From: Paramicrosporidium saccamoebae KSL3
Taxonomy: Eukaryota > Fungi > Cryptomycota
Reading direction: 5' to 3'
DNA: 32,000 nucleotides
NCBI GenBank assembly: GCA_002794465.1
Contig: MTSL01000113.1
Location: forward strand, 1 to 32,000
Part shown: one piece after another, positions 1 to 32,000 of the stretch
Layout of the letters: each line of letters opens with the position of its first letter
How positions within the stretch are numbered: position 1 is the stretch's first letter
Program-made: the position numbers and the translations under genes
Notes under the pieces: generated by a model
The model's input: only the letters and a program-made list of their open reading frames with translations
Database searches by the model: none
Told to the model about the DNA's origin: nothing

Positions 1-1
1 A

Positions 2-4410: not shown

Positions 4411-4445
4411 AGTGTTTCCAATAAAAATGCCAATTGAATTACAGC

Positions 4446-4633
4446 TGTGAGAGATATAGGGGGGAGTGTGAATGTGAGTCATAGGTGTGGGCTATAGATG
4501 CGAGTCACAGTGTAACTGCACTGTTAAGCATGTGCGATAATAGTTCCTGTACCTATAGGGGTCCTACGTCCCCGTGTCGTAAGAAATAAACGATAATAGT
4601 ATTAATGTTTATCAACTCGACTTTGAAATCACA
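4446..4633. repeat. Candidate degenerate LTR-like segment (TGTGA...TCACA, 188 bp)
   Basis: 5-bp terminal inverted repeat and an internal AATAAA about 45 nt before the right end. There is no target-site duplication and no second copy in the window. Confidence 0.2.
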
Positions 4634-4702
4634 GTACAGCATACGCCCCACAAGTGCAACCTATAAAAACAACGACGCTGATTGGTGGACGCTTTTCTGA
4701 CC

Positions 4703-8506: not shown

Positions 8507-8718
8507 AGAGCTCATGATAATAGTCATTTAATGGATAGAAAATGCCCCAATAAAGAGATTAAATTAAAGTAAAGATCCTATCCCTTTATGATGGGCATTT
8601 TAATCCTATTCCCGTTAGGTATTCCCGCGATCCCGTCAGCCACCCCACAATCTCCTTAGTTACCCCCGATTCAAGCCCTGGTATATACATACCACCTTAC
8701 AGAACTCTAATATTCGCC

Positions 8719-9744: not shown

Positions 9745-9748
9745 TACT

Positions 9749-9788
9749 GGGATAGTGGGATAGTGGGATAGTGGGATAGTGGGATCGT
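9749..9788 (+). repeat. Minisatellite (GGGATAGT)4 + GGGATCGT in the 3' flank of RMND1; G-quadruplex pattern
   Basis: Units at 9749, 9757, 9765, 9773 and 9781. Five GGG tracts separated by 5-nt loops. Confidence 0.9.
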
Positions 9789-10011
9789 GGATCCGGAAAT
9801 GGAAAAGATAAATTTGTGACTGTCTCTGTGGAAGGTTAATGGTGAATCTGAGAGTACGCAGTCCATTATTTACAAGCCCAGCACTCTAGAGTAACGGTAA
9901 TAAAATCAAGTCCATCGACAGCTTAATGGGTTCATAAAGATTTGCGCAACCACCAATCATGAGATTTCCCTACCGACCTCGGAAACGAATAATAGCATTT
10001 CGTTCCACCTC

Positions 10012-13000
10012 ATGGCTGGTGGTCGTACAAGTCTCTATGAAAGACAGTGGAATGAAGTCGATGCTATCAAGTCAATCTACATTGTAATCACTGCTATTTT
10101 TGCCAAAGTATTAGGATGAATATGAGGAAATAGCGTATCCATGGAGCGTATATCATTCAAGTAGAATTCACATTCAAATAGGTCGACCATCCCCCGTGTT
10201 TTGTAATACATCTGAGCATCACTGAGACTGGAGCTCAGGGCAGCACTTGCGCAGTTGATTTAGAGTTCAAGTACCTACTGTTATTTTTCCGACAATTTAG
10301 ACTGACCCCGTCATATCCGGATACAGTTCCCGAAATCAAAATAACCAAAAAGCGTGGAATGCAGTCTTCGCAGACTCATTCGATGCAGGAGCAAATGTGC
10401 CAGAAAGCAAGGACCCTGCTCGGATCTGAAATGATATTTGATTTGGTTGAGCACGCAAAAGTATTGAATCGTCTGCTCTCTTTAACCTAGCAGGAGTTGT
10501 TGACCATGGCGACAAAGAAAAAAGTGTCCTTTCATGACGAAATGACAATGAGAAAAACTTTGAATCGCGCAACTCTGGATCAGGAGACTTTGCATGCAGA
10601 CTCATCCAAGGCAAACGTGAGTCCTGAAGCCGAGGAGCTTGGTATCACCTGGATAACTCTGCTAATCCAGTAGCAAGCCGAATCAAGCACGAATTGGAGG
10701 TAAAGGAAAAACTGGTCAAGTCGGCGCGGGATAGGAAAAATTCCGAAGATCCCAGCGATTTTAGCAAAATTCTCCACTTTGACCCTCCGCTAAGCATCCA
10801 ACTTCCCGATTCTGAAAAACCTTTAAAAATTCCCAAGCTTTTTGTGGGCGACGCGCTGGTAGAATCGGTGCTAGGGGGAAACACTTTTTGCGCAGAGTTT
10901 GATGGACTAGAGTTTCTAGCAACATCGATCCGATTTGAGGGCGCCTTTTATCACACCACCCACGGAAGGAAGAAATTACACGCCGTCGGTAAGAAGATTC
11001 AGGAACTTTCCCATCTGGGATACAGCCCACTGTATTGTCGTCTGTTGGGGTCCACGCTGGTCGAGGTGGGTGAGAAAATGTCCGACTTGTGGATTGTGAC
11101 AGATAATTATTCTGGAATGACCATGGAGTGGTTGTTAAACTGCAGTGGAACATTCAGTCTGAGCAAGTCCATGTCGTATGTAGAGGATATTTTGCATTCA
11201 TTATCTGATTTGCACTCGAGCAATGTTGCCCATCAAGGTACATGGCACGATGACGAGCTTCTAATGTCTGTAGATTTGCTACTTTCAAACATTATCATCT
11301 CAACTGGAATTGCTGGGTTGAGGCTGATTCATCCTGCAATCACACGCCTACTTAGAGATTTGCATCAGACACATCCAATTTCTGGTCGTTTTACCTTGCC
11401 CAGTGAGATTTCGTGGCGACCACCAGAGGTAATTTCCAAAGGCGGTCAATCTGGCAAAAAGGCAGATATTTGGCATCTTGGCCACGTGTTCCTCCAAATG
11501 CTCTTTGGAATCTCATTCCCTGCAGCATTTGAGACTGCCGATGATGCCTTGGAGGTGGTCAGTGGTCTTCCCGCCAGTGTTCAAAGTCTAATCAATTCCA
11601 TGCTTGAAAGGGAGACCACATGCCGGCCCTCAGTTGCCGAAATTTTGAATCACATTGCCTTTTCACCAAAATCTATGAAAGAGTATGAATCATACACCAC
11701 CAAAAACATTTCTCTCGCACCAAGGAACATTCCCGTCGACATTTCCAGTCGAAGTGATCGCCGAGAATCTTCACGATACAAGACTGATTTTGAAGAGATT
11801 CAATTTCTTGGACGAGGCGCATTTGGACAGGTCATCAAGGTTCGCAATCGCATTGACAACCGATTCTATGCCATCAAGAGGATCCGGTTGGATCCATCAA
11901 ATTTTGACTATAACAACAAGATTTTAAGAGAAGTCACCACCCTTAGTCGGCTTCACCATGACCGGGTAGTCCGGTATTATCAAGCATGGATTGAGGGGGG
12001 TTTGGCATCCCGGTCGGAAGACTTGAGGGAGACAAGTGAGTCGTCTGAGGAGGAGGAAGACGATGGGACTGATGACGAGTGGAGCAGGGAAGGCATTAGC
12101 AGCAGAAAAATGTACTCGAGTAATATGATCCAGTCCAACTCCAGCCTGTCTTCACTAATCCAATTCCACACTGGATTCACCTCGTCCGAAGCATCCAGTC
12201 AGAATGCCCTTGAAAGTACAGCCGAGACAATGTTGGCTGCTGGCAATGGGCCACAATATTTGTACATTCAAATGGAATATTGCCCTAATCAGACCCTAAG
12301 GGATGTTATTGATGCTGGTGTTGACAGCGACGAGGCCTGGCGACTATTCCGGCAGATTGCCGAAGGCCTTTGTCATGTGCATTCTCAAGGAACGATCCAT
12401 CGTGATTTAAAGCCGGGAAACATTTTTCTGGACACTAATGGGGATGTTAAAATTGGAGATTTCGGCCTTGCCGTTGGAGAAGATGGTGAGATTGTCAGCA
12501 AATCTGCGCCTGTTGAAGTTGTGGATACTGGTGAATCTTTGACAGGAGGAATTGGCACTCCTCTGTACGTTAGTCCTGAACAAGAGGCTCATGGCAGTCG
12601 CTACAATCAAAAGGTTGACATGTACAGTCTTGGTATCATTCTGATCGAGCTGTTGGTTCCTTTCACAACCGGCATGGAACGTGTTCTAGTCATAAAAGAT
12701 GTCAGGAGTGCTGCCGTAAAGCTCCCTGACATATTTAGCAGACCCAATATGACAAAAGCTGCATCAATTTTGAAGAATCTGCTGGGACACGATGCCAAGA
12801 CTCGATTCACGTCAGAGGAGCTTCTTCGGAGTGACTTGCTTCCCGTCAAGATGGAAGATGAGTACATTCGCGAGGCTATCAGAACCGTGTCATCTCCAAA
12901 TACCCCGTACTACAGTAAACTATTGACGACAGTCTTTTCCCAGGGATATGATCCGCTCAAAGCGTTCACATTTGATTACCACGCGGGAATTACGAATGAT

Positions 13001-14701
13001 GCAGCCATCCTGTCTGGCTTGGACAAGGTGGAATCCATCTTGACGACCGTGTTCAGTAGACATGGTGCGGTTCGCTTCGAACCTCCGCTACTCGTCCCCA
13101 AAGGAAGTACGGCGGGACCCACGTTTCTGTCATCTTCGGGACAGCTCGTGCAGCTTTCTGACAATCTCACCACACCATTTGCAAGGTTTGTGGCTCTAAA
13201 CTCCATCGCCGATATGAAGCGGTTTACGATTGGTCCAGTGTTTCGAGAAAACTTGGCGGGAGGGCAGCCTCGCCAGCCTCTGGAGGCTTCATTTGATCGC
13301 GTCTACTCCAGTGAGGATAACCTAATACCCGAGTTGGAGGTGATTCGAGTAGCTAGCACAGTGTTGGATGAAGTGGTGGGCTCCCAATCCTTTGTTTTAC
13401 GGTTGAATCACGCCGATATTTTGTCAGCTGTACTTACGCAGTGTCTTGTGCCCGCCAACAAAAAGAAGGACGTGATGGAGGTTTTGTCTCAATTCAGCAA
13501 ATCCAGCTGGATTAAAGTAAAAAGTCTGCTCACTTCACGCGTGGTCCTGCCTCCCGCCGCGATTGATAGTCTTGGTAAAATTGTTGGGATCAAAGGTAAT
13601 TGTGCAAGTGAGGTTGGTAGTAAATATCTAGATTTGGAGCCTCTTGTTGCTGTCAAGAGATTGGGAGACATTTTAAAGAGTATGAAAGAGTCTGCAGAAG
13701 CCATTAGGTACATTAATTTACTAGTGGCATGCATTCCCCAAATTGGTATCAAATATCGCATATCAGTCGATCCGCTGTTCAATCTCAATGATGTCATTTA
13801 TTCTGGGACCATGTTTCAGGTCATAATGGAGGATCGAAAAAAGACGGACGGACTGGTGTCTGGAGGTTCGTTTAGGAAACTTGTCGACAGCTTCAGGTTT
13901 CCCACAGACCGTGTTCGCAACATTAACGCAGTGGGGGCGGTCTGGAATCTCGGTCGACTTTTGAATATGAGGTCGTCTCTCGGGATACGAATCGGAAAGG
14001 AGCCTATTGTTCTCATCTACTCGGCTGGTCCGGATATGCTGCTTGAGAAGCTGAACATTGCATCGCTACTATGGGATTCCGGCATAGTTGTGGATATTAT
14101 CCGGGAAGACATTGTGACCGGCGAGTATATCAATCAGATTGTTCGGATAAGGGGAATCTCTGCCACCATTCACTTGAAGGATCATTCTTCCCGAGGACAA
14201 TTTGGTGTTGTCAGGTTAAAGAGCATTGAGAAAAGGCAAGAATTTGAGTTGACCCGATCGGAGATTGTCGACGCGCTTTGCTCAATTTTTGCCGAAACCG
14301 ACAGGGAAGTGTCTCGAGATGAGCAAGGTATGACCCCACAGCCATCCTCGACGCCCCTCAATGTGTCGCTGTTTGCGCCATATGCCAAGATTAAGGGAGG
14401 CCAGAAGACTATTATTATGGAAAAGGCTGTCCGCGCCATGTCTCCCTTGCTGGCCACCATGTCTGGGACTGCGCCCATTGAAGTAATTGCTCATGACATG
14501 TCTCGGGACCTGTTGCGGCGTGTAATGGACACTCTTTCTGAGGGCGATGATTCATTCAAGAAGCTGGTGGATTCGCGCGACGATCGCAATGCAGCCACGA
14601 AAATGAGGACGCTGCTTAGAGGACTCCGTGAAAAGTCGTTTGCCTTCCTTTATCATTACAAGGATAATTGCATCGACCTGGCGCCGTTGACAATTCAATA
14701 A
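10012..14701 (+). CDS. GCN2: eIF2-alpha kinase GCN2 (RWD, pseudokinase, kinase, HisRS-like, CTD), multi-exon
   Basis: Hand-spliced exons 10012-10083, 10115-10147, 10182-10270, 10301-10460, 10491-10641 and 10671 onward give an RWD domain (RQWNEVDAIKSIYIDEY...VDLEFKLTPSYPDTVPEI...GSEMIFDLVEH) in frame with the long ORF. Kinase motifs are LGRGAFGQV, YAIKRI, LYIQMEYC, HRDLKPGNIF, KIGDFGLA and GTPLYVSPE. The HisRS-like part includes VFSRHGA and PFARFVA. Confidence 0.95.
10084..10670 (+). other. Five spliceosomal micro-introns in the GCN2 5' region: 10084-10114 (31 nt), 10148-10181 (34), 10271-10300 (30), 10461-10490 (30), 10642-10670 (29)
   Basis: All begin GTA and end TAG or CAG. Removing them yields a continuous frame matching the RWD domain. 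GCTAAT in intron 5 looks like a branch point. Confidence 0.85.
11238..11273 (+). other. Probable in-frame, stop-free 36-nt intron hidden inside the GCN2 ORF
   Basis: GTACAT...CTAAT...TAG. Removal converts VAHQGTWHDDELLMSVDLLLSNIII into VAHQDLLLSNIII, a subdomain VIb-like HxD...NI motif. Confidence 0.7.
13596..13631 (+). other. Possible in-frame, stop-free 36-nt intron in the GCN2 HisRS-like region
   Basis: GTAATT...CTAG, phase 1, same size class as the other introns. No protein motif confirms it. Confidence 0.35.
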
Positions 14702-14755
14702 ATATTCTATTTCTGGAATGGCGAGTCCAAAGAAACGCAGCCTGGCCAAGGAGAC

Positions 14756-15325
14756 ATGAAGGAGGTGAGATTCAAGAGACGTATGATGAAGCAATTTCTC
14801 CTGGATGCGACAATCTGTGCATTCCAAGAACGCCGAGCAACACTTCCCAGACCAAACACAATTCGTGTTGAAGAGGACGCTCTTAACTTTGACGACAATA
14901 GCAATATGGAAAATTCCTTGCTCGAGAGTCCCTCTATATCGCTGAAAGGAATATTTGCCCATTTCAAAAAGACGAGTGCAGTCACCATAAAGCACAAGAA
15001 ACCGACGTACGAGTGTGTTCCATTCTCTGATGGCAAGATCTTTGATTCCCAAAGCTACAAAGATTGTCCCCGATCCATAATGGAGCCCCCTGACGAGAGA
15101 GATAAGAGGGGTAAGGAGGATGAGAGAGATGGAAGAGATGAGAGAGATGGGAAAGATGGGAAAGATGAGAGAGATGGGAAAGATGACCATGTTCAGTCGT
15201 TCAGGTGTCAGCCAGACGCGCCTGTCAAGTCGTCCAGGCGTTGCCCTGATGACCAGTCCATGTCTTCATTGCAAGATGCCTTGAGTATATCAATGGGCAT
15301 TGAAATTGATAGTTTTGAAGGGTAA
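14756..15325 (+). CDS. Orphan hydrophilic protein, 189 aa, with D(E/G)(R/K) repeats
   Basis: ATG-to-TAA ORF filling the gap between GCN2 and Doa10. I recognise no domain. Confidence 0.5.
   Translation: MKEVRFKRRMMKQFLLDATICAFQERRATLPRPNTIRVEEDALNFDDNSNMENSLLESPSISLKGIFAHFKKTSAVTIKHKKPTYECVPFSDGKIFDSQSYKDCPRSIMEPPDERDKRGKEDERDGRDERDGKDGKDERDGKDDHVQSFRCQPDAPVKSSRRCPDDQSMSSLQDALSISMGIEIDSFEG
15092..15190 (+). repeat. Eleven degenerate 9-nt units (GATGAGAGA/GATGGGAAA) encoding DER/DGK
   Basis: Direct reading of the 9-nt periodicity. Confidence 0.85.
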
Positions 15326-15607
15326 TCTAGTTTTTGTGGTAACATTTTGGTAGGAGTGACTTTTATGACTAGCCGTTATAGTCTGCGTGAGAAGCAAGAG
15401 AGCGTATGTTTGTGCTTGGGCAATACTATCATGTCGACGGAACAGAGACAAAGTGCGCGATAGTGCATAATCTCATCCAATATCGTACCATATTATCTCC
15501 TCTAGTATCGTGTCGCGTCATTCCATTTAGTACCGTCTCATAGTATGGCTTAGCATCTCTGCAAGCCGGGATATTGATGCGTTTGACAGTTCCTATTTCG
15601 GTCAGCA

Positions 15608-15616
15608 GCCAATCAG
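15608..15616 (+). promoter_or_regulatory. CCAAT box (AGCCAATCAG context) 10 nt upstream of the Doa10 ATG; related CCAATCA boxes at 3569-3575, 4679-4685 (reverse) and 9953-9959
   Basis: Matches the NF-Y/HAP consensus and recurs within 60 nt of four start codons. Confidence 0.5.
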
Positions 15617-15625
15617 GCGGACCTC

Positions 15626-18600
15626 ATGGTCGCTGATACTGCGCATGACCATAGCGCTCCCGGTACGCAGTCCTATTTTCCGTCTGACTTGGCGGTAGAA
15701 ATATGTCGCGTCTGTCGTGGAGAGGCCACAAATGATCAGCCTCTATTCTATCCTTGTCTATGCTCTGGTAGCATCAAGTACGTCCACCAAGAGTGCCTGC
15801 TGGAATGGCTGAAACATTCCAAGAAAAAGTATTGTGAGCTATGTAAGCACCCATATTCGTTCAGTCCAGTTTACGAAGAACTCATGCCCGCTCGTCTGCC
15901 CATAAGTGTTATCAGTCTAGGACTGGCACGGCAATTTTTTGGAATCCTTCGAATCGGCCTACGCTATGTATATCTTTCTGCCATTTGGCTTGTCCTCGTG
16001 CCCACCATTACCACTTCAACACTCTGTCTTTATCTGGGATGGGGAATGGTGGGACTCAAAGAATTAAGCCTTGTCACTGCCATCTTTAATGTGGGAGTCG
16101 GCCTAGGAATTACGTCAGTAATGGTGTTACTTTTGATGAGCTTATTATTACTGAGAGACTATATGTTGACACATCGACTGTTGCGTGTTCGGAGACGAAG
16201 ACGTGCCAACGGTATGGGTATGGGAGTGGGTGTCGGTGCGGGTGCGGGTGTAGATGTGGGGATAAATGAAGGGGGTAATGGGGAGATGAATAGAGATGCG
16301 AATAGAGAGGCGAATGGAGAGGTGAATAGAGAGGCGAATAGAGAGGCAAATGGACAAGAACCTGGAGATGCAAATAGAAGGGAAAACGAAAGAGAACTTG
16401 CAGATGAAGCTACAGGCATTGATGAAAATTCAGCCATCGGAATTCATCGCAACAACAATCCAACCATGGGAATCTATCGCAATAATGATCCAACCACGGA
16501 AATCTATCGCAACAAGAATCAAACCGCAGGAATCCGCCGCAACGACAACCTACCCACGGGAATCCACAGCAGCGATAATCCAACCGCAGAAATCCACAAC
16601 AGCGTTAATCTGACCGCAGAAACCCACAACAGCGATAATCCAACCACAGAAATTCACAACAATACCCGTCCAGCCACAGGAATCTACCGCAATGGAAATC
16701 CCATCGCAGAAATTTATCGCAGTGAAAACTCAGTTACAGAAATTCATCACAATGGTAATTCAGAGACAACGGCGAGGACCTTTGTGACTCGACAATCTGA
16801 GAGGTCATATTGGCTACAAAATGTCGTTCCTCGTGAATATCGAGCATATCTCCGACGTCGCGACCTTTACCGCGAGAGAAATCTTCGAGGGAGCCATTCT
16901 CATCTTGATGCGGACACTAGCGCGCTAACCTCCAGACCACAAGCGGTCGAGAATGCTGCCGTCGCTAGCTCTTCAATCACAAATTCAAATGTAGAAGAGG
17001 GTGGAACTTTTCATCGCAGGAACAATGGACTAAGAGAGCACAATCGGGGAGAAACGTCCCACATAGCCGGGTCAAGCACATTGAATGTCACGTTCCGTGA
17101 TAATATTCGCTGCAAGATTTGCTCTAGTGTAGTCTGTATCGACAAGGAACATGTTGTTTTGGCATCTCAGAGGACCCGACAGCAAGAAGCTACAAGCGGA
17201 GCCGAGCCAGAGGAAGGCCAAGGCACCACAACTGATCCGCTCCCTGTGGCACCCGTTGCTGACATCCCTCCTCCCCCTCGACGGGTAGAGGATGCTGCGG
17301 TAGAGGCTAATCAGTGGAATTTCTTGGGAATGAACTTTGAGGGTGATAACGGGGCAGCCATGACATTGTCCGAGTTTATTGGGCTGACCGGCTCACTTCT
17401 GTCTGTAATCCAGAATGCCTTTGTCATTATTTCTTGCAATGTCATGGTTCTTCACTCTGCAGTTTTCGTTCCCCAAATGGTCGGGAAAGCCGTCCTCAAA
17501 GGCGAACTGCCGCTTTGGCTATCCAATGGAATTTCATTTATCGAATCCACAATTTTCAATGTCGCCACTTCCGAATCAGATGTGACAAAAGTATATCCCT
17601 TGGCCAAGAACGCATTGGCAGCTATTGTATCGCATGGCAAGCCAGCTATTACATCTCTATCGATGATTCCAGACTATCTGATAACTCTACTGCCAAACAA
17701 CTTTCAAGGATTGCTATCGGAACGACTTGCAACAATTGGAACTAATGCTAGACTCGCAACGACTTTATTTTCGTACTCGGAGGGGTATTATATGGATTTC
17801 ATCTTGCAGCTCTTTGCCGGGTACTTGGCAATTCTCTGCACTTGTGGTGTATACCGGCTGCTTGTGATTGATAATATGCGCAAATTGGATGACTTGCATC
17901 GCGGCCTTTTGCAAATGTTTCAGCTTTTTTCGTCATATTTGAAACTTGTTTTTTTCATGATGATTGAACTGATTGCTTTTCCAATTTACTGCGGGTGGAT
18001 GGTGGACCTTTCGTCACTAAACATGTTTGCATCAAACTTTGCCGGGAGAATTGGGTTCTACAACAGTTATCCATTTTCATCGCAGCTGATCCACTGGTCG
18101 GTGGGCACAATCTTTCTTATTCAGGTATCGGTGATGATCAAGTGGTATCGAAGCGTGTTTCGGCCAGGCCTGCTCTACTTTATTCGAAATTCGGATGATC
18201 CGGATAATTTGCCCTTGAAAGAGGTAGTGGAACGATCCGTCCACGACCAGCTATTGAGATTTGTCAACTCTTTGATTCTCTTTGGGATAGTCATTGTCTG
18301 CCACATTTATGGCTTTTCGGTCATGTGCCAGTTGTTTGTCCCCAATCTAATTCCCCTGAACATTAGTTTCCGTAACTACACTGCCGAGGTGCCGTATGAC
18401 TTGTTTGGAAACCTCTTTGCCAAAGTCTTGGTAGATTTTCTCAATCCTGGTACGATTGGAAAATTGTCGCGGGCATTTATGCGATCCGTTCTGAAGCTTC
18501 TCAGACTCAGTTCTTACTTTTATGGAGGCCGATATCTTTATGAAGAGTCGCTTACTACAGGAAAATGGGTGTTTGTTCCAGATGCTGAACGGGTGTACAA

Positions 18601-19633
18601 GGCTGAAAAGGTCCGGGACATGTTTCAAAGGCGGGTTGAGCCTCTTGATATCGCCAAGATTCCAGTTGTTGAAGGTCGCGATCCGTCCACTGTACCAATT
18701 GCCCCGACTGTCCCGGTTGAGCCCAGACGGCCAAGAAGAGTGGGCGCGGGCCGACGTGCTGAAGACCCAACCAAGGGATTCACCGTGGTATATCGACCAA
18801 ACAATTGTGCTGCCCGAGTATACTTGTTCTTATTTACCGAATGGCTCTACTATCAACTGGTGGGAATGCTTCTTGTCGCTACGCCCATTCTAATTGGACG
18901 CTACATCTTTGGCCTCTTCTTGACTGATGGTACCAAGGCACATGAGATGCACACTTTTATGGCAGGATTCATGGTCATGGGGGTGTTGATGAAGACGGTT
19001 CAGCTGACATACAATGTCCTATGCGATGGGGGCTTGGTAAATGTCCTCAAAACTAGCATAAGAGTGCCAGTTATTGCTCTCAAAGCGGCCATTGTGGGGG
19101 TCTTTATTTCATTCCTCTGGCCCACAATGATTGGGGCTTACTTGATGCTCATCTTGTCACCTTTGCTCTCATCGGTGAATGAGACACCCATTTTACCGCT
19201 CTTTACGTGCTGGTTCATTGGATTCATGTATATCAAGGTCTTTTACACTGTGCGCGACGTTCTTTGTTCGACTGAAAGAGTCCAGATTCTTGATCGACTC
19301 GCTACATTAGAGGGATGGACAGATATGCAATTTATGCAGGTCATGCTCCGTGTTGTTCTGCCATACACCATGCGTCTCGTAACGCTCATCGTCGGTCCTC
19401 CATTGGCCGTTGTCCTGCTGGCGCCGCTGATTGACCTCGATTTTGTCCAAATGTTGATTATCGGCAGATGGTCCTACCTGTTGAGCCTGGCTGTGCCTGC
19501 AGTTGTTCTGGGGGTGGGTTTGATATCCAATCTTCGACAAAGTATGGCCATGCGCATTAGAGATGACAACTATCTCGTCGGCCGACGGCTCCATAATCTC
19601 GAGAGGCCCCCAAGCCAGCCTCGATTCCCGTAA
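15626..19633 (+). CDS. DOA10: ERAD E3 ubiquitin ligase Doa10/Ssm4/MARCH6, with a large low-complexity insertion
   Basis: N-terminal RING-CH (CRVC...PCLCSGSIKYVHQECLLEW...CELC), EFIGLTGSL, the TD region (IELIAFPIYCGWMVD, HWSVG, FRPGLLYFIR), many TM helices and a C-terminal IRDDNYLVGRRLHN. Confidence 0.95.
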   Translation: MVADTAHDHSAPGTQSYFPSDLAVEICRVCRGEATNDQPLFYPCLCSGSIKYVHQECLLEWLKHSKKKYCELCKHPYSFSPVYEELMPARLPISVISLGLARQFFGILRIGLRYVYLSAIWLVLVPTITTSTLCLYLGWGMVGLKELSLVTAIFNVGVGLGITSVMVLLLMSLLLLRDYMLTHRLLRVRRRRRANGMGMGVGVGAGAGVDVGINEGGNGEMNRDANREANGEVNREANREANGQEPGDANRRENERELADEATGIDENSAIGIHRNNNPTMGIYRNNDPTTEIYRNKNQTAGIRRNDNLPTGIHSSDNPTAEIHNSVNLTAETHNSDNPTTEIHNNTRPATGIYRNGNPIAEIYRSENSVTEIHHNGNSETTARTFVTRQSERSYWLQNVVPREYRAYLRRRDLYRERNLRGSHSHLDADTSALTSRPQAVENAAVASSSITNSNVEEGGTFHRRNNGLREHNRGETSHIAGSSTLNVTFRDNIRCKICSSVVCIDKEHVVLASQRTRQQEATSGAEPEEGQGTTTDPLPVAPVADIPPPPRRVEDAAVEANQWNFLGMNFEGDNGAAMTLSEFIGLTGSLLSVIQNAFVIISCNVMVLHSAVFVPQMVGKAVLKGELPLWLSNGISFIESTIFNVATSESDVTKVYPLAKNALAAIVSHGKPAITSLSMIPDYLITLLPNNFQGLLSERLATIGTNARLATTLFSYSEGYYMDFILQLFAGYLAILCTCGVYRLLVIDNMRKLDDLHRGLLQMFQLFSSYLKLVFFMMIELIAFPIYCGWMVDLSSLNMFASNFAGRIGFYNSYPFSSQLIHWSVGTIFLIQVSVMIKWYRSVFRPGLLYFIRNSDDPDNLPLKEVVERSVHDQLLRFVNSLILFGIVIVCHIYGFSVMCQLFVPNLIPLNISFRNYTAEVPYDLFGNLFAKVLVDFLNPGTIGKLSRAFMRSVLKLLRLSSYFYGGRYLYEESLTTGKWVFVPDAERVYKAEKVRDMFQRRVEPLDIAKIPVVEGRDPSTVPIAPTVPVEPRRPRRVGAGRRAEDPTKGFTVVYRPNNCAARVYLFLFTEWLYYQLVGMLLVATPILIGRYIFGLFLTDGTKAHEMHTFMAGFMVMGVLMKTVQLTYNVLCDGGLVNVLKTSIRVPVIALKAAIVGVFISFLWPTMIGAYLMLILSPLLSSVNETPILPLFTCWFIGFMYIKVFYTVRDVLCSTERVQILDRLATLEGWTDMQFMQVMLRVVLPYTMRLVTLIVGPPLAVVLLAPLIDLDFVQMLIIGRWSYLLSLAVPAVVLGVGLISNLRQSMAMRIRDDNYLVGRRLHNLERPPSQPRFP
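16277..16360 (+). repeat. Seven 12-nt units (AATAGAGAGGCG consensus, NREA)
   Basis: Direct reading within the Doa10 insertion. Confidence 0.85.
16439..16768 (+). repeat. Eleven 30-nt coding units, consensus (G/E)I(H/Y)(R/N)(N/S)xNPTx
   Basis: Units start every 30 nt from 16439 to 16739. Confidence 0.9.
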
Positions 19634-19765
19634 CTCGCTCTAGATGCTGCTGCTAATGAAACAAAAAAATTATACTATTCTAAAGCACTGGTAGGGGGTT
19701 GGTTGTATGTTTTAGAGTCGTAATGTTTGGACCTGGGTGGTTAAACGATCCTGTTAGTGTCCACT

Positions 19766-19921
19766 TGTGATTGGTAACCCTGATAGCTATTCCATGCTCC
19801 AGTATACTAGGGGTAGCAGTCTAGAATGATGTCTTTTATAAAGGAATACTCTCGTCCACCAATCGATCCTTGACATGTCTACGGGCTAGGAACTCTAAAG
19901 GGCTTTTACTTGAACCTCACA
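19766..19921 (-). repeat. Candidate second, older LTR-like family (TGTGAGGTTCAAGTAAAAGCC...TATAAAAG...TCACA)
   Basis: TGTGA/TCACA ends and an internal TATAAAAG. Its first ~21 nt match 25235-25255 (TGTGGGGTTCAAGTAAAGACC). No TSD. Confidence 0.3.
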
Positions 19922-19927
19922 ATATAT

Positions 19928-20138
19928 TGTTGCGTAGTGGGGATAGAACCACGGGCCCTGCCAGGCGGGAAGAGAGGAGATGGGACGAGAAGAGAATTTA
20001 TTCAGTCAACCCAACGACCCATTTATAGTCTCCCAAGTGGCATGGCAATAGTCTTCAAATACCCAGCAACTAGGTCTTCTCCAAACTAGGGGACTATCCT
20101 CAAAACCCAACTAATCAACCCTCTATCTCTACGTCACA
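19928..20138 (-). mobile_element. Solo LTR-like element, copy 1 (211 bp)
   Basis: Plus-strand ends TGTTGCGTA...TACGTCACA; flanks ATAT/ATAG (3 of 4 match). Homologous to 25372-25544 and 27649-27860. On the minus strand, TATAAA is followed by AATAAA. Confidence 0.75.
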
Positions 20139-25234: not shown

Positions 25235-25321
25235 TGTGGGGTTCAAGTAAAGACCTTGTTGAAGAGCAAACTTATTTTTATAAAAGTATGCGGCATATAG
25301 GCAGCCATCCTCAACGTGACA
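25235..25321 (+). repeat. Short LTR-like remnant of the second family (TGTGGGG...TATAAAAG...CGTGACA)
   Basis: The 5' 21 nt are similar to the reverse complement of 19901-19921. TGT...ACA ends, no TSD. Confidence 0.3.
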
Positions 25322-25371
25322 GAAATGGCTTGTGGGATCACTATCTGGGTCGGACTCATCAATGATAAGTG

Positions 25372-25544
25372 TGTGACGCAGAGGCAGAGGGTTGATTAGC
25401 TGGGTATTTTTGTGCTATAGTGGATCGCTTTGCTGGGTATTTGAGGACAATGAGACGTGTATCCATACTATTATAGGATTAGCAGTGAACAAACCCCTCT
25501 TTCTCGCCTGACAGTCCATACTATTTATCCCCCACTACGCGACA
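25372..25544 (+). mobile_element. Solo LTR-like element, copy 2 (173 bp)
   Basis: TGTGACG...CGCGACA, flanked by a perfect 4-bp duplication AGTG (25368-25371 and 25545-25548). The first 34 nt match the copy 1 reverse complement at 30/34. The last 44 nt match the copy 3 reverse complement with a single indel. Confidence 0.8.
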
Positions 25545-25659
25545 AGTGTATGATGCTTAACAGGCCCTTTATTCGAGTCTTTGGTCCATAGTTATGCTAT
25601 CTCACAACTGGGGATCACTTTAGAAACAGTAAATTACTAAAAGTGGCACAGCCACACCA

Positions 25660-27630
25660 ATGGTGTATTATACGGCAATTCCGTTACTATTACTCTTATT
25701 TCGAGGAACTCACTCCGCTGTGGCTAGTTCTAGTAGCGACAGCGATGACTTTGCCCTCCCTGCATCGGTTGAAGCTAATGTCCCCATAAATTTCGACACC
25801 TTGATTAAAGCTGGGGGAGACTTGGACTTTACCACACTCGAATCCCAACTTCAGGGTGGTGACCCAGAATCCATCTCTAAGCAGTGTCAGTCAATATCTA
25901 TCATAGTGGCCAAATTCTGTATGCTCAAAAATACCGAAAATGTCGTACAGCAGGCACTCGATGCGGGCTGCTACAAGGCTCTGCAGTGTTTTATGTGCCA
26001 GGCAATTTGGAAGAATCAAGAGCGAGAACATTGGGTTTGGGCCAAGATTTATGGCACTCCCGCTTTTGATCAAGAATCTTGGAATCGGCGAAAATTCCAA
26101 TGGGAAAAATTCTGGAAGATGATAATCAAGGCCGATAATAGAAAGTTCTACTTGCTTACGAGCAGTGCGCCATGTTTAAAGGTCTTTTCTGATGAAGATT
26201 TATACAAAGCTATTATCGAATTTGATGCGGTCAACATCCTCTCCTCTCTCGGTGCAGAGGCGGTGAGAAAGTTGGCAGGAAAGGTAGATTTGATAATCGA
26301 ATACATGCCGCCTAGAGTAATTGCCTGGATCATCGGCAGCGTTCACGAAATTAAAGCTAATACCAGACATCTCATCCCTCAAATGGTCAAGTCTTCCAAA
26401 GCACTCCAGTATCTCCTCCATGTTGGCTACGACCAGATTCCAAGGCCCTGCCTGTATATTAAGAATGATCTGCCGGCTGTCTACAGCAATTATGCATATT
26501 GGCTTGCCAAGCGAAATTGTCTGTCCTTACTGCAGGAAATGCTCAAGGAAAATCCCAATTTTAATCGCAACTATGCTTGGTTTCGAAAGTCCGCCATCAA
26601 GGGAGGCAGTCTCGACGTTCTAGAGTGGCTGTACAAGATGAAGAAAATCAAGCTTGTACCCGCAGAATTGGTGTGTCTTGTTGTCAAAAAGGGAGATTTA
26701 AAGACCATCAAATGGATAATCGAAAAGTTTGGACATTGTATTAATTGGGATCACGTGTTACGGCAGTCTTATTCATCTTGTCGTTCGCGTAAAACTATCA
26801 GATATATACAGAAAAACACTAGTGCCATTTTGCCCGACCATTATATCCCAAGTTTCCTCGCAGCAAAAGGTAATCTTCCCGAATTACAGGCTACAATTGC
26901 AAGCTCAAGGAGCACTTTCTCGTGGAAGAAGGTAGCCAATGCCGCAGCTGAAGCTGGCCATACCAATATTCTCGACTGGGTCTACCAAACATCATGTACT
27001 CTTCCGAGCTCAAAAGCCGTGGAACAAGCTTGTAAGATGGGTCATCATACTGTCCTCATTTGGATATTCAAGGTTGATTCCTCTCAGATAAACTTTGATG
27101 GCTCATATCGCAAAATTGGTGCAGCGTATTGCCTTCTCTACGCCGCCATGAACAACAATCAGGAAGATATGGAATGGATATTAGAGAACCTCTTTAAGAC
27201 TAACCTGCCAAGCATGGATAAAGTTTATCGAGAAACCAAAGTCGTCCCTGAAGAGGCACAATTAAGAGCTCTCAAATGGATCGCATTAAAGGGTGCCACA
27301 GAGATCCAACCAGAGATGATGACAAGGGCGGCCAGTTTGGGCCATTTACAAATTTTCCAATGGCTGTATAATCAAGGACAGCCCGTAACTATTAATGCTG
27401 TGGAAGTGGCTGCTATGGATTGCAACGTAAATATTTTGGCCACCATATACGAAATTGATCAATCTTTGGTGTGCACTGTAAGAGTGGCTAACCTGGCAGC
27501 GATGCGCCGTTTTTGTTTACAAAGATATACCGTCTTAGATTGGCTGTGGAGGGTGTGTAACGTCCTCCCTACAAAATGGGATTTCGATGAAAAATGCCTT
27601 GAAGAGTGGATAATAAGCAAGCGATTGTGA
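25660..27630 (+). CDS. Putative secreted protein with about 9-10 degenerate ankyrin-like repeats (AAxxGHLxILxW type), 656 aa
   Basis: Signal-peptide-like MVYYTAIPLLLLLFRGTHS. Repeats include SAIKGGSLDVLEWL, VVKKGDLKTIKWI, AAAEAGHTNILDWV, ACKMGHHTVLIWI and AASLGHLQIFQWL. Confidence 0.85.
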   Translation: MVYYTAIPLLLLLFRGTHSAVASSSSDSDDFALPASVEANVPINFDTLIKAGGDLDFTTLESQLQGGDPESISKQCQSISIIVAKFCMLKNTENVVQQALDAGCYKALQCFMCQAIWKNQEREHWVWAKIYGTPAFDQESWNRRKFQWEKFWKMIIKADNRKFYLLTSSAPCLKVFSDEDLYKAIIEFDAVNILSSLGAEAVRKLAGKVDLIIEYMPPRVIAWIIGSVHEIKANTRHLIPQMVKSSKALQYLLHVGYDQIPRPCLYIKNDLPAVYSNYAYWLAKRNCLSLLQEMLKENPNFNRNYAWFRKSAIKGGSLDVLEWLYKMKKIKLVPAELVCLVVKKGDLKTIKWIIEKFGHCINWDHVLRQSYSSCRSRKTIRYIQKNTSAILPDHYIPSFLAAKGNLPELQATIASSRSTFSWKKVANAAAEAGHTNILDWVYQTSCTLPSSKAVEQACKMGHHTVLIWIFKVDSSQINFDGSYRKIGAAYCLLYAAMNNNQEDMEWILENLFKTNLPSMDKVYRETKVVPEEAQLRALKWIALKGATEIQPEMMTRAASLGHLQIFQWLYNQGQPVTINAVEVAAMDCNVNILATIYEIDQSLVCTVRVANLAAMRRFCLQRYTVLDWLWRVCNVLPTKWDFDEKCLEEWIISKRL

Positions 27631-27648
27631 GAGCGGACTGAACAATGG

Positions 27649-27860
27649 TGTCGCGTAGTGGGGGTAAATAGTATGGACTGTCAGGCGAGAAGGGAACCCG
27701 TTCATTTTTAATCCAATAGCCCTTTTATAGTCTCCCAAGTGGCATAGTAATAGTCCTCAAATACCCAGTATAGTGATCCACTCAAATACCCAGCAACTAG
27801 GTCTTCTCCAAACTAGGGAACTATTTCTAAAAGACATACTAATCAGTCTTTTACGTCACA
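27649..27860 (-). mobile_element. Solo LTR-like element, copy 3 (212 bp)
   Basis: Plus-strand ends TGTCGCGTA...TACGTCACA, flanked by a perfect 4-bp duplication ATGG (27645-27648 and 27861-27864). CTATAAAAG lies on the minus strand. The central ~100 bp closely matches 20023-20097 apart from a 25-nt insertion. Confidence 0.85.
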
Positions 27861-27899
27861 ATGGGATCTGTATTAATATTATATTCTCAAGCTTGTTCA

Positions 27900-28056
27900 T
27901 GTCATTTGCAAGACTAAAAATAGACTGTCGGAATAGCGGTGAACGACCATGAATGGCAGCGAGCAGCAATTAGCGAGTTTTCTTCCCTCCTCACCTTTTT
28001 CCTTTTCGTCTCTACCCGCCTGATAAAGTCGGTGGAGTCCTTTCCACTACGTGGCA
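27900..28056 (+). mobile_element. Diverged copy 4 of the same LTR-like family
   Basis: The 3' end CTCTACCCGCCTGATAAAGTCGGTGGAGTCCTTTCCACTACGTGGCA aligns with the copy 1 minus-strand end CTCTTCCCGCCTGGCAGGGCCCGTGGTTCTATCCCCACTACGCAACA. The 5' boundary is uncertain and there is no TSD. Confidence 0.5.
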
Positions 28057-28078
28057 ATCCCACCCTCGCCACGCACCA

Positions 28079-31000
28079 TTACAACTCTAATTTCCAAACT
28101 TTCTCCCAATCTGTAGCAGCCTTGTCGTCGGCAGCTTTGCATTCTTGCACAAGATCCAAAGTCTTTCCCTCAACTTCAGCCTTTAACACCATCTGAACAA
28201 AAGTCCAAAGATCACTGCCCAAAGCATGGCGTAAAGGAATCCATACCTTGTCCCCTTCCGTCCTGTCATATAGCATTTTTGCGTTTGTGGAAGGGGCGTT
28301 TGGATAGAGGTCACTCTGTAGCATGTACAATTTGCCCTTTTGCAGAGTCACCGGCTGTTGTAGCAAAGAACTTTCACATAAATTTGTGGGTCCCGAGTCT
28401 ATGTGGCAATCTAAATACTTTCCCCAATGTAGACAGGACAAGTGTGGCCACGCTGGCCTACTTCCCAGGGTGAAATTTTGATATTGAATGCGGATGCGAA
28501 GAATCGAATCAACAAAGTCATTCTTACTGACGCTGGCCTCTTTAAATTTTCTGAAAATTTCAGATATCGGACCGTGAAGCATTTGTGTATACTGTCCCAA
28601 GTTACTGCATTTTTTGCTGATGGCCGCAAATGCCACCAGCAATCTGGGATCGTATGATACGAGGATGGCTAGAGCGCTGCTAATTTTTGCAAAAGTGCGA
28701 GTGCCTGGCGTTAGGGACTCGAGGAATTCGTGCAACTGTTTGTTGCAGTCATTTACTGTCTCAAAAAACATGGAGGTGATTGAAGTTTTGATAAACTCTC
28801 TTGCTGTATGCGCACTTAAGGCATCTACTAGCTTTTGGCAAGTAGGATCTTCTGCGCACGAGTTGATGACAGTGTCAGGATCAAAAGCGAGGTCCCTTAC
28901 AGATCCAAATACGTTGCTCAGAATGAATGTATCGAATAGATTTGGAAAGACTGCCGCCACATTGTAGCCTATTTGGGCGCCGAGATCATTACCTATCAGA
29001 ATCAATTTGTCGCCCTCGCGCCATCTTGACTCGTCATTCCGTATGGCCATGGCTAACAGCGCAACATCATTGGAAACGTACTCGCCAGAGAGATTTGCCA
29101 TTTTGAGTTCATTGGCTTGGGCCTTGTTCCATGGAACGCCTTTGAGATGGCTATACTCTTCCAGTCCACGATATTGGCTTAGATAGACCACAAAGCCAAG
29201 TCGAGTCAAGGATCTTGCATACTCGAAATTTTTGCTGGTCAAGTATTCCGCCGAGTCGGTTAACAGAATTACATGACCCCCGCTGACGCGGCTATCCTTT
29301 AGCTGGCCGCAATTCCAGACTTTAAATTCGAACCGCTTCTCAACGGACCGCTTGTAGTTGACTGGGAAGGAGATTTGGCACATCCTACAGCCGGACTCGT
29401 CATCTTCAGTTTCTTTGAGCCGAAAGTCTTGGTGTACCAAATTGCCAATCCAGTCTGCGTGTGTGGGCATATCCATTGATGATATGACCGCTCCCTTTCT
29501 AGTCACTGTTGGGAGGGCGATTGGCGCATCTTTTACCATGGACCATATGTTTTTGAATGGATGTTCCGTCTCTGAAAATTCCCATTTGATGGGCTCACTC
29601 TGATTGCTCTCCTCAAAGCACTGCTCTGCGGCCAATGTGGACTGGCCATAGACTGCAGCAAGAATGTATTTGGCTTCGCACGGCCCGGTAAGGTTGTGGC
29701 CACGATTGTTGACTGGTTGAAAGATTTTTGATGGCACGGTTACCCGGTTAAAGAATTCCTCTCCGCCACGGTAGCTTGTTCGAGCATCAAAAAGTCCTTG
29801 CATATGAATTGTTGCAGTCTTTGCAGAGTTAAGGTATCCCTGAGAGTGTTCATCCTGTCCAGCTAGACAAAATTTGCAGAACATGGACGCTGGGAAGGGA
29901 TTGGTGAGCTGATAATTATAGTACGGATGGAGTTCTGAACGTTTTTTTAGCGAGCTGTCATTGGAAATGTTGAAATTGACAATTTGGTTGACAAAGCTGT
30001 TGGATTCGTTAAGACTCCATTCAATCTGTCTGACAGGACCCGTGTCCTGTTTGTACTTTTGAACAGCATTCTTTAGCGGTAAGATGACATTTTCCACGTA
30101 CCCATCAAAGTCAGTACAATCTACGGTCGCCTTGACAAATGGTAGTAAAATTTGAACATTGGTCCACGTTGCTCCCGGTAAGGGCGCTACAAAGACAAAC
30201 TTTCTAAGATAGGCCGAAATGGACGAAATTATAGACTCTGGAGTGCCGCTGGGGATTTCCAGTTGTCGACGCATTTCCTTCACGCAACGATTAGCAAATT
30301 GCTTTCCGAGTCTCTCGACCATTGCTGAAAAGGCAAGGGGAATGTCAGAACCCATTTTAGAGCTGCAGAATGGATCTAATTTGCAGTGCTCCAAGATGCC
30401 CCAAAGAGTGTAAGCTTCTTCCGAGCCGTTGCGCGCTGGCATACCTCCAAGAATGATTGAATCAAACAAATTGGGCGCTAGTTGAGCTGCTTCATGAGCC
30501 CACAATGCGCCATATGAGAATCCGTAGACTGACAGCCGACTGTCAGGGTCACCGTGGCTCAGGGCTGACGCTATTATATTGACATCCAAGGCAGCATTGA
30601 CAAGTTGCAGATCCTTCTCATCAAGTTTCTTGTTGACAATTGCATTCTTGAGATCAGATGTTTCTATTTCCCACGATTCCTTTGTCTCGGTAAATTGACC
30701 TGATTCTCCAAGGCCGCGATGATCAACAAGATAGGTCGCAACGTCGCCATTTGTCAATTCGGAAATGAGCGTCGCATTGTCGCGATATGCCACGCCTGGT
30801 CCTCCAGGACCGCCGTTTAGAAATAGCAAATGTGCTCGTGGGATCTGTCCGCGTTGGGTGTATTGATAAAATGTCAGTTCAAATGTGCCCCCTTCGGGAT
30901 CCTTGTAGTTGGATGGGACCTTGAGTTGGCCCCGTTTGCAGATCCGCCCCTTTGAATAGTGAATGTTGTCTTTTTCACACTTGGACCATTTAATGCAGTC

Positions 31001-31996
31001 TTTGCACTCGGGCCCATTAAATTCTAATAAGATTCTTTCCAAGTCCTTTTGCTCTGGCTGTGGTACATACCCCGCGTCTATTTGTGAGAGGCCCGCAAGG
31101 CGCTTTTTTGGATCATCTAGCAATTCGGGGGTTAAATAATCAAATGTAAACTTGAGATTTTGTCTGCACTTTTCAGAGAAAGCAACTCTCAGCCAGGTAT
31201 ATCGGAGGTACTCCCCTTTGCGTAGGCTTGCACAGAATTCCGGAGGTATGTATTCAATGACTGAGGCCGCATTTTCCACATTCTTTAGCGTAGCGAAAAG
31301 ATGAATTCCAGCGCGCTTCTGGTGACACACAGTGATGCCCTCTGTAATTACTGGTCCCAGAATGTCGTACAAGTTGACAGGAAGGGTTTTGGCTCTGACT
31401 ATCAATGCGTGTGCGAGCAGAGGAACAGTAGCCAGTAACGATTTCAAATGTTCCTCATCAAGGTCGCAACTGGGAAGATTTAATAGGCCAATGTCATCTT
31501 GACCTTTGAACAATTTCTCCGCCCATTCTGGCGCTCGATCTTGAGAAAATAATAGTTCTGCCCACACAAACTGTGGTATTCTAGTTCTATCAGATAAGGC
31601 AACGTTTTGAAAGCCTTGCGGATGCTGTTTCATCCACCCTAGCAGTACGTCTTTGGGGATGACTTGGAACGCTTGCCCAAGTGCTCCTGTGGGTTTGCTA
31701 AAGTATCCCTCGAGGCAATTTTTTGTAACACCGGCCATTGCATACAAGGATACTTGGTCTAAACCTAGCTCATTACAGATCATTGGCTGGTCTAATTTTT
31801 CGCCAAACGAGGCTAGCTGCTCTTTGGTGATTCTTTTGAGTAGCGCGGCTGACAATGGTCCATTATAGAAGGAGAATGCATCTGGACCAAGGTTTTTGAC
31901 TGCCGTATCTCCAGCGGTACCAAGATCTGAAAGATGCGCTACACATGATGGGGGGATGATCACGGAATATATAGCGAAATAATCCAGCTTCATCAT
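28079..31996 (-). CDS. Large protein: uncharacterised N-terminal ~330 aa + intact S33/TAP-like alpha/beta hydrolase + degenerate second hydrolase domain; may be 5'-truncated by the window edge
   Basis: Domain 1 has LNGGPGGPG, VDHRGLGES, GFSYG (Ser 30515-30517), QGLFD and RGH. Domain 2 has SQYRG, GNDLG and PNLFDTFIL. The frame is still open at the right edge, so the start may lie upstream. Confidence 0.88.
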   Translation of the reverse strand: MMKLDYFAIYSVIIPPSCVAHLSDLGTAGDTAVKNLGPDAFSFYNGPLSAALLKRITKEQLASFGEKLDQPMICNELGLDQVSLYAMAGVTKNCLEGYFSKPTGALGQAFQVIPKDVLLGWMKQHPQGFQNVALSDRTRIPQFVWAELLFSQDRAPEWAEKLFKGQDDIGLLNLPSCDLDEEHLKSLLATVPLLAHALIVRAKTLPVNLYDILGPVITEGITVCHQKRAGIHLFATLKNVENAASVIEYIPPEFCASLRKGEYLRYTWLRVAFSEKCRQNLKFTFDYLTPELLDDPKKRLAGLSQIDAGYVPQPEQKDLERILLEFNGPECKDCIKWSKCEKDNIHYSKGRICKRGQLKVPSNYKDPEGGTFELTFYQYTQRGQIPRAHLLFLNGGPGGPGVAYRDNATLISELTNGDVATYLVDHRGLGESGQFTETKESWEIETSDLKNAIVNKKLDEKDLQLVNAALDVNIIASALSHGDPDSRLSVYGFSYGALWAHEAAQLAPNLFDSIILGGMPARNGSEEAYTLWGILEHCKLDPFCSSKMGSDIPLAFSAMVERLGKQFANRCVKEMRRQLEIPSGTPESIISSISAYLRKFVFVAPLPGATWTNVQILLPFVKATVDCTDFDGYVENVILPLKNAVQKYKQDTGPVRQIEWSLNESNSFVNQIVNFNISNDSSLKKRSELHPYYNYQLTNPFPASMFCKFCLAGQDEHSQGYLNSAKTATIHMQGLFDARTSYRGGEEFFNRVTVPSKIFQPVNNRGHNLTGPCEAKYILAAVYGQSTLAAEQCFEESNQSEPIKWEFSETEHPFKNIWSMVKDAPIALPTVTRKGAVISSMDMPTHADWIGNLVHQDFRLKETEDDESGCRMCQISFPVNYKRSVEKRFEFKVWNCGQLKDSRVSGGHVILLTDSAEYLTSKNFEYARSLTRLGFVVYLSQYRGLEEYSHLKGVPWNKAQANELKMANLSGEYVSNDVALLAMAIRNDESRWREGDKLILIGNDLGAQIGYNVAAVFPNLFDTFILSNVFGSVRDLAFDPDTVINSCAEDPTCQKLVDALSAHTAREFIKTSITSMFFETVNDCNKQLHEFLESLTPGTRTFAKISSALAILVSYDPRLLVAFAAISKKCSNLGQYTQMLHGPISEIFRKFKEASVSKNDFVDSILRIRIQYQNFTLGSRPAWPHLSCLHWGKYLDCHIDSGPTNLCESSLLQQPVTLQKGKLYMLQSDLYPNAPSTNAKMLYDRTEGDKVWIPLRHALGSDLWTFVQMVLKAEVEGKTLDLVQECKAADDKAATDWEKVWKLEL

Positions 31997-32000
31997 TGCG

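Follow-up and report, generated by a model that had tools for sequence, protein, structure and literature searches.

Solo-LTR-like repeats of one dispersed family flank a putative secreted ankyrin-like gene in Paramicrosporidium saccamoebae

Introduction

The delta, sigma and tau solo long terminal repeats (LTRs) of yeast (Ty1/copia, Ty3/gypsy) are among the closest described counterparts of the repeats that we report here from Paramicrosporidium saccamoebae, a member of the Rozellomycota that lives as an intranuclear parasite infecting Saccamoeba amoebae. The stretch of DNA analyzed (hereafter the window) comprises positions 1-32000 of contig MTSL01000113.1 (33,909 bp; assembly GCA_002794465.1), and window coordinates are therefore contig coordinates. 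Near its end, two repeat copies in inverted orientation, copy 2 (25372-25544, plus strand) and copy 3 (27649-27860, minus strand), bracket a gene for a putative secreted ankyrin-like protein (25660-27630, plus strand). Like the yeast solo LTRs, these repeats are ~170-210 bp long with TG...CA ends, imperfect terminal inverted repeats, short target-site duplications and an internal TATA-like sequence, and they occur as dispersed intergenic copies that comprise many decayed fragments and a few intact young copies. Unlike in yeast, no full-length parent element, primer-binding site (PBS), polypurine tract (PPT) or gag-pol was seen; the duplication is of 4 bp (5 bp with the first T of the element) rather than the usual 5 bp; and there is no link to tRNA genes, which were absent from all loci examined, leaving no sign of tRNA-linked targeting.

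A second comparison is with the Tf1 and Tf2 solo LTRs of Schizosaccharomyces pombe, elements whose insertion sites lie upstream of RNA polymerase II promoters, as copy 2 and an unlinked copy (L004a, below) lie ~25-60 nt from motifs that the neighboring gene shares with its paralogs, and most copies found here are at most ~250 nt from a gene start or end. The likeness is limited in that almost any tolerated insertion into a genome that is 76% genic would lie near a promoter or terminator, and our sample is small and biased. The rearrangements associated with inverted Ty elements or LTRs in yeast also involve two inverted copies around a unique segment, but at this locus the duplications are intact and matched and the shared identity extends over just 44 bp. 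LTR retrotransposons are known from Microsporidia, for instance Nosema bombycis (Xu et al., 2006, as cited in PMC11585130); the parallel is that retroelement remnants are present in a relative of the P. saccamoebae lineage of reduced intracellular parasites. For P. saccamoebae itself the genome paper gives 0.53% repeats, reports no transposons and describes 76% of the genome as genic (PMC5701793), and our literature search turned up no published account of its transposons.

An earlier note, made from the letters of the window, had drawn attention to the bracketed gene and to a near-identical 44-bp segment at the inner end of both copies, and had proposed gene conversion between the copies, an invertible or excisable cassette, or selection on a shared regulatory end, along with a possible LTR-driven promoter and antisense switch. 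Here we present evidence that the flanking repeats are likely members of a single dispersed family, either solo LTRs or remnants resembling them, which inserted independently of each other and whose similar ends come from a young subfamily to which both belong.

Results

Repeat copies were sought in the window and in additional P. saccamoebae loci (L002, L004, L005, L020, and L021) that were reached via paralogs of both flanking genes, giving a sample of 98 kb on six contigs out of a 7-Mb genome. A search with nhmmer and a hidden Markov model (HMM) of the family identified 16 copies or fragments, which make up ~2.3% of the sampled DNA, as against the 0.53% reported for all repeats genome-wide. 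Intact copies are 173-212 bp long and read 5'-TGTGACG...GCGACA-3' (copy 1 ends in GCAACA), with terminal inverted repeats that agree at five of seven bases (TGTGACG versus TGTCGCG, the reverse complement of the 3' end). Copies 2 and 3 each have a perfect target-site duplication, AGTG/AGTG and CCAT/CCAT, respectively, in LTR orientation (a perfect 4-bp flank match has a chance probability of 1/256), L004a (CTCG/CTAG) and copy 1 (CTAT/ATAT) are matched at three of four positions, and the older copies are without any. A T follows the right-hand repeat in copies 2, 3, and L004a and is also the first base of the element, and it is feasible that the duplication is of 5 bp. The TG...CA ends, the target-site duplications and the dispersal of the copies together indicate that the repeats behave as solo LTRs, in agreement with their designation as LTR copies in the earlier note. 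Assignment to this class would follow from end structure and duplications, without an internal region. The "sense" direction that the note gave to the LTRs is an assumption, however, because TG...CA reads alike on both strands and no PBS, PPT or internal region was found; we retain it below as a convention.

The inverted match itself is well beyond chance. Positions 25501-25544, the inner end of copy 2, are the reverse complement of 27649-27691 in copy 3, with 97.7% identity over 44 columns, one gap, and an E-value of ~1e-15 by blastn within the window, and a repeat finder run on the window returned the same arms. They differ by a single T that is present only in copy 2 (TTTA[T]CCCCC), and the perfect blocks on its two sides are 27 and 16 nt long. 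The noted match of 43 bases plus one extra T was thus confirmed, as was the much greater divergence of the remainder: when the 44-nt end is set aside, the two copies are identical in 94 of 176 aligned columns, and whole segments differ, although a second common block is found at 25419-25451 and 27750-27782 (88%). The outer end of copy 2 resembles copy 1 (86% over 37 nt), and so does the middle of copy 3 (86% over 59 nt and 98% over 43 nt), making "mosaics", the term used in the note, a fair description. The near-identical part does face the gene on both sides, with 115 nt between the end of copy 2 at 25544 and the ATG at 25660, and 18 nt between the stop codon (27628-27630) and the start of copy 3 at 27649.

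Alignment of the family revealed two kinds each of 5' end, middle and 3' end, which are interchangeable. The type-A middle (...CACTTGGGAGACTATAAAwGGG...) is present in copies 1 and 3 and in L002a, L002b, and L002c, and the type-B middle (...GTGTATCCATACTATTATAGGAkTAGCAGTGAAC...) in copy 2, L004a, L005a, and L005b. TATA-like sequences occur in both (type A, TATAAAA or TATAAAT; type B, TATTATAGG); an AATAAA follows ~20 nt past this box in copy 1 only, and L002a has GATAAA at that position. The TATA-like box and the AATAAA of copy 1 are the sole hints as to a sense direction. What we term the young 3' end (CGCCTGACAGTCCATACTATTTAyCCCCACTACGCGACA, bearing CTGACAGTCCATACTATTTA) was seen in three copies, namely copy 2, copy 3, and L004a, while an older 3' end (...GGCAGGGCCCGTGGTTCTATCCCCACTACGCAACA) and its relatives are carried by copy 1, L002a, copy 4, L021, L004b, and L005c. 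Copy 2 (173 bp, TGTGACG...GCGACA) accordingly combines a type-B middle with the young end, and copy 3 (212 bp) combines the young end with a type-A middle containing GACTATAAAAGGG.

The full-length copy L004a (L004 2110-2286, contig MTSL01000137) is particularly informative, as it is unlinked to the window and has the young end, CGCCTGACAGTCCATACTATTTAT-CCCCACTACGCGACA. In the terminal 44 nt its agreement is 42/45 with copy 2 and 41/44 with copy 3, as compared to 43/45 between copies 2 and 3, values that are statistically indistinguishable. Its 5' part is like that of copy 3 (84% over 81 nt) and its middle is like that of copy 2 (92% over 111 nt, L004 2179-2286), such that copy 2, copy 3, and L004a represent three different combinations of segments with the young end in common. 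The occurrence of the same end, in a third combination, on an unlinked contig makes both the shared end and the mosaicism properties of the family rather than of this pair. Family-wide conservation of the 44-bp end, which the note had named among the observations that would point away from an event particular to the pair, was consequently found in large part: the end recurs in L004a, but copy 1 and others have the older variant.

The flanks of the two copies bear on how they came to their present arrangement. Copy 2 lies between AGTG at 25368-25371 (flank GATAAGTG) and AGTG at 25545-25548 (flank AGTGTATG), and copy 3 between ATGG at 27645-27648 and ATGG at 27861-27864, both read on the plus strand; in LTR orientation the flanks of copy 3 are GATCCCAT and CCATTGTT, giving the CCAT/CCAT duplication. 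That the duplications of the two copies differ indicates two separate insertion events, and that each copy has its own matched pair indicates that the intervening segment is in its original orientation, with no net inversion through the pair. The outermost flanks, AGTG (25368-25371) and ATGG (27861-27864), form no common duplication for the whole unit and, being unlike, show that it is not a composite transposon or excisable unit.

The region between copy 2 and the gene was compared with the upstream regions of paralogs. An alignment of six paralogs identified three shared motifs, yCCAATyAAAA at about -80, AGATGmAATTTAC at about -55, and AGTGGCGCAGCCGTAC directly before the ATG, which have been kept although the proteins are only 35-44% identical. 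In the window they fall at 25575-25659 (plus strand) as a degenerate CCAAT-like box, ...AAATTAC... and, immediately ahead of the ATG, AAGTGGCACAGCC, and the versions of the window gene (...TAAATTAC...AAAAGTGGCACAGCCACACCAATG) are inside the 115 nt that separate copy 2 from the ATG. This segment is likely the native core promoter or 5' untranslated region (UTR), and, as the shared motifs are downstream of copy 2, the gene is probably transcribed from its own promoter and not from copy 2. The equivalent regions elsewhere are at L004 ~8130-8218, L005 ~6000-6088, L002 ~430-529 and ~2740-2826, and L021 ~1330-1420, and the motifs may belong to the promoters or 5' UTRs of a family that is regulated in common. 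A similar situation is seen at L004a, where an ATTGG-containing motif common to hydrolase paralogs lies between the LTR and the hydrolase ATG. A transcript initiated in copy 2 would also include ATGs at 25550, 25553, and 25594 that open upstream open reading frames (uORFs) of 13, 12, and 9 codons before the real ATG. An LTR-driven promoter, as the note had suggested, is thus unnecessary and somewhat disfavored. Across the family, the copies show no uniform direction toward the nearest gene start, with copy 2, L004a, L005a, and L002b pointing in and copy 1, L004b, L005b, and the L020 and L021 copies pointing away. Enhancer effects, or antisense RNA from copy 3, would still be compatible with these observations.

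Two further copies are present in the window. Copy 1 (19928-20138, minus strand) is full length at 211 bp, combines the older 3' end with a type-A middle, and is situated between the MARCH6-like and RibD_C genes. Copy 4 (~27872-28057, plus strand), which adjoins copy 3 and was absent from the earlier account, was detected with the family HMM (nhmmer E-values of 3e-14 and 3e-22) and is older, diverged and 5'-truncated, with an ancestral-type 3' end (...CCACTACGTGGCAA) that lies 21 nt away from the neighboring hydrolase gene's stop codon. Copies 3 and 4 both lie in the 448-nt spacer between convergent genes, which makes this spacer almost entirely LTR-derived. A copy at L004 7946-8061 has an equivalent antisense position 8 nt past the stop codon of a paralogous hydrolase. 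In all, 15 of the 16 copies are intergenic; the exception (L005 11912-12044) falls inside the extent of a glutamine-synthetase III gene, where it neighbors a short tandem duplication (11671-11817), and is presumably intronic. Twelve of the 16 are beside a member of the ankyrin-like or hydrolase family, through which the sample was reached, and no copy was found in positions 1-19,900 of the window or in the intergenic regions of the housekeeping parts of L002, L004, and L005.

Several candidates for related or explanatory structures were examined and rejected. The direct pair L002a/L002b (L002 6962-7182 and 8513-8650) encloses a host membrane-protein gene and no gag-pol and is not a full-length element. 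A scan of metagenome sequences with TGGGTATTT-N(88-118)-CACTACRCRACA gave 14 loci, none of which matched the family HMM, and these were considered chance matches. Another repeat, TGTGrGGTTCAAGTAAA (25235/19921), was considered as an empty-site paralog spanning the site of copy 2 and offered just a 17-nt and a 10-nt match. Co-duplication of LTR fragments with gene pairs was likewise rejected, as the LTR copies are 70-95% alike versus 65-75% for the paralogous coding DNA.

The bracketed gene (PSACC_01592) is a continuous open reading frame (ORF) of 656 codons. Its product has a signal-peptide-like N-terminus (MVYYTAIPLLLLLFRGTHSAVA...), with a hydrophobic core and small residues at the would-be cleavage site, a pattern that by eye is conserved in the paralogs, and this is followed by a predicted alpha-solenoid. 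In Pfam, Ank_4 scored 26.9 bits (cut-off 22.7) and other ankyrin models were just under their cut-offs. The AlphaFold2 model, built from a five-sequence alignment, has a mean predicted local distance difference test (pLDDT) score of 73, with residues 240-656 mostly at 75-95 and forming paired short helices, and its top matches in the PDB were AnkB (4rlv, E 4.7e-5), DARPins, and FEM1C, at low template modeling (TM) scores of 0.15-0.25. Low TM-scores are usual between solenoids of differing curvature. On these predictions "secreted ankyrin-like protein" is a reasonable description; the earlier note's "candidate effector" is supported as to the 656-residue ORF, the signal-like N-terminus and the ankyrin matches, but "effector" is a guess.

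The ankyrin-like gene family is lineage-specific, with database searches returning only P. saccamoebae proteins and one Joint Genome Institute (JGI) metagenome protein at 34-40% identity, besides weak ankyrin matches elsewhere. By tblastn, L004, L005, and L021 have complete paralogs, L002 has two such genes in tandem, and L020 has a distant paralog; a profile of seven paralogs used as a query for more P. saccamoebae loci added only PSACC_01592, the truncated gene model of the window. As deposited, PSACC_01592 has 351 residues (L003 6515-8250) versus the continuous ORF of 656. The models of the paralogs are also faulty (L002 500-4818, L004 8219-10297, L005 6089-8221, L021 1382-3430), in that one model of 517 residues fuses two tandem paralogs, others are split (227, 120, and 80 residues) and one paralog is uncalled. 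These wrong gene models have hidden the family from protein searches. Exact-sequence look-ups of the 656-residue ORF and of the cytochrome c1 ORF gave no match because the deposited models differ from the ORFs.

Downstream, and convergent with the ankyrin-like gene, is the 3' part of a gene for an alpha/beta-hydrolase of 1901 residues (28079-32000, minus strand), which leaves the window; the ORF inside the window has 1305 codons (28079-31996, minus strand), and paralogs are named "Proteinase (Secreted protein)". Members of the ankyrin-like family and of this family of hydrolases of 1400-1900 residues are immediate neighbors at six loci, where the pairs are variously convergent, divergent or in tandem (in both orders): the window (25660-27630 with 28079-32000), L004 2346-10297, L005 1331-8221, L021 1382-5972, L020 3920-11229, and L002 1-4818. 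All six are at contig ends, and the pairing may reflect a functional pair or a subtelomere-like compartment. L005 1-725 and L021 1-787 are the same contig end of ~750 bp (89% identity, no long ORF), which may be another repeat that broke the assembly.

The rest of the window is gene-dense, with long, intron-poor ORFs that by Pfam encode an oxysterol-binding protein, an ABC transporter, a GCN2-like kinase, a MARCH6-like ligase, a RibD_C protein, a ubiquitin hydrolase, and cytochrome c1, in addition to the ankyrin-like gene and the large hydrolase. Short-period tandem repeats are present at 29-268 (12 nt), 15092-15181 (9 nt), 16265-16348 (12 nt), and 16427-16666 (30 nt), the last two inside the MARCH6-like ORF, where they would encode low-complexity peptide repeats. 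The motif TGTGrGGTTCAAGTAAAr-CC-TT occurs at 25235-25262 (plus strand) and 19894-19921 (minus strand), followed 40-70 nt on by TTTATAAAAG, and once in a related metagenome contig (L001 6241-6266, minus strand), with no similarity beyond it; it may mark the terminus of another repeat family or represent a conserved signal. An Rfam scan of the window found no RNA family at the gathering score. Pfam scans of large or unannotated ORFs of the window, L002, L020, and L021 identified no reverse transcriptase, integrase or Gag, and no recombinase, transposase or reverse transcriptase was encoded in the window or the extra loci examined.

Discussion

The bracketing of the ankyrin-like gene by inverted copies is real, and we consider its likely origin to be two independent insertions of members of a single LTR-like family. 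In a compact genome insertions would be tolerated mainly in short intergenic spacers, and in this case one would have landed immediately 5' of the proximal promoter that belongs to the gene and the other just past the stop codon, in opposite orientations. Descent of both copies from one young subfamily would account for their near-identical 44-bp inner ends, and the differing combinations of interchangeable segments among family members for the dissimilarity of the rest. The mosaicism would itself have arisen by recombination between element lineages, either through template switching during reverse transcription or through ectopic conversion among many copies.

Several points weigh against this interpretation and should be considered with it. 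No full-length element (two LTRs, PBS, gag-pol, PPT) was found in the 98 kb sampled of the 7-Mb genome, and the genome paper gives 0.53% repeats and no transposons. The sample is biased, as every extra locus was entered through ankyrin-like or hydrolase paralogs. The young end as a subfamily trait would depend on a single unlinked copy, with three carriers in all. Finally, copies 2 and 3 have in common a T in CTCGCC and the 33-nt block (AGTGGATC...CTGGGTATTTGAGGAC, 88%), both of which L004a is without, and some exchange between the two copies is possible as a local contribution.

Such exchange is the essence of the proposal that gene conversion homogenized the inner 44 bp of the inverted neighbors after their insertion. 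The copies are only 2.1 kb apart, their last 44 nt agree at 43/45, marginally above the 42/45 and 41/44 that they show with the unlinked copy, and the T and 33-nt block are theirs and not those of L004a. We nevertheless regard local conversion as unlikely, because the margin over L004a amounts to one or two positions and is not significant, the presence of the same end on another contig makes conversion unneeded, and copy 2 matches L004a continuously over the 111 nt, which indicates that its 3' end belongs to its own middle and is no imported patch. Far less probable still is that the gene is a cassette, inverted or excised by homologous recombination of the 44-bp arms or mobilized as a composite element. 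Arms of 43/44 identity do bracket the gene, and the convergent, tandem and divergent neighbors at other loci attest to past rearrangements in the family, but a flip through the arms would exchange the inner flanks and leave AGTG...CCAT and CACT...ATGG, whereas the observed duplications are matched at each copy. The lack of a duplication at the outer flanks excludes a composite transposon, the perfect blocks are merely 27 and 16 nt, a Pfam scan of the ten largest ORFs of the window revealed housekeeping genes only and no recombinase or transposase, and the 35-44% protein identity of the paralogs implies that their varied arrangements long predate the young LTR copies.

Two other explanations concern what the repeats do or are, rather than how they moved. 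The copies may have been co-opted, with copy 2 serving as promoter or enhancer and copy 3 as a source of antisense RNA or a terminator, and the two ends of the messenger RNA (mRNA) might even pair. Consistent with this, four copies (copy 2, L004a, L005a, and L002b) are, if the assumed sense direction is right, aimed at a gene start at a distance of 59-245 nt, there are TATA-like sequences in the family, and the computed RNA duplex of the two arms has an energy of -83.5 kcal/mol. We think this improbable given that about as many copies (copy 1, L004b, L005b, L020, and L021) are upstream of genes in the opposite orientation, that the paralog-shared motifs are between copy 2 and the ATG, that a start inside copy 2 would place three uORF ATGs ahead of the real one, and that the sense direction is assumed. 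It is also conceivable, yet doubtful, that the repeat is not an LTR at all but another short mobile element or a duplicated regulatory module of the ankyrin-like/hydrolase pairs. The failure to find an internal retroelement region, the almost repeat-free state reported for the genome, the proximity of 12 of 16 copies to one of the two gene families, and the antisense location of the element's 3' end 8-21 nt past the stops of two hydrolase paralogs are all in keeping with this. On the other hand, TG...CA ends, 4-bp duplications and imperfect terminal inverted repeats are an LTR signature, and orientation and distance to genes vary, unlike what is expected of a fixed regulatory module. Copies are also found by unrelated genes (MARCH6/RibD_C, the membrane-protein gene, and within the glutamine-synthetase span), and their 70-95% likeness, compared to ~65-75% for the flanking paralogous coding DNA, makes them younger than the gene duplications.

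With two independent insertions as the preferred explanation, the arrangement is an ordinary one for which no gene switch or new mechanism is needed. We see only a slim prospect that the LTR-like copies are other than inert, in the sense that by inserting next to the promoters and terminators of these secreted-protein genes, candidates for a role in host interaction, and exchanging segments they aid the regulation or reshuffling of the pairs; were this true, it would take the form at this locus of an LTR-initiated or antisense transcript or of pairing of mRNA ends via the 44-nt arms. The comparison of target-site duplications has a use beyond this locus, as matched duplications provide a simple, sequence-only test for past flips of inverted-repeat pairs. 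What is new is a previously undescribed, dispersed and partly young LTR-like family in P. saccamoebae, which is worth an entry in repeat libraries for Rozellomycota and early Microsporidia. Its clustering, in the sampled DNA, by two co-located, expanded and badly annotated families of secreted proteins hints at a repeat-rich host-interaction compartment in this 7-Mb genome.

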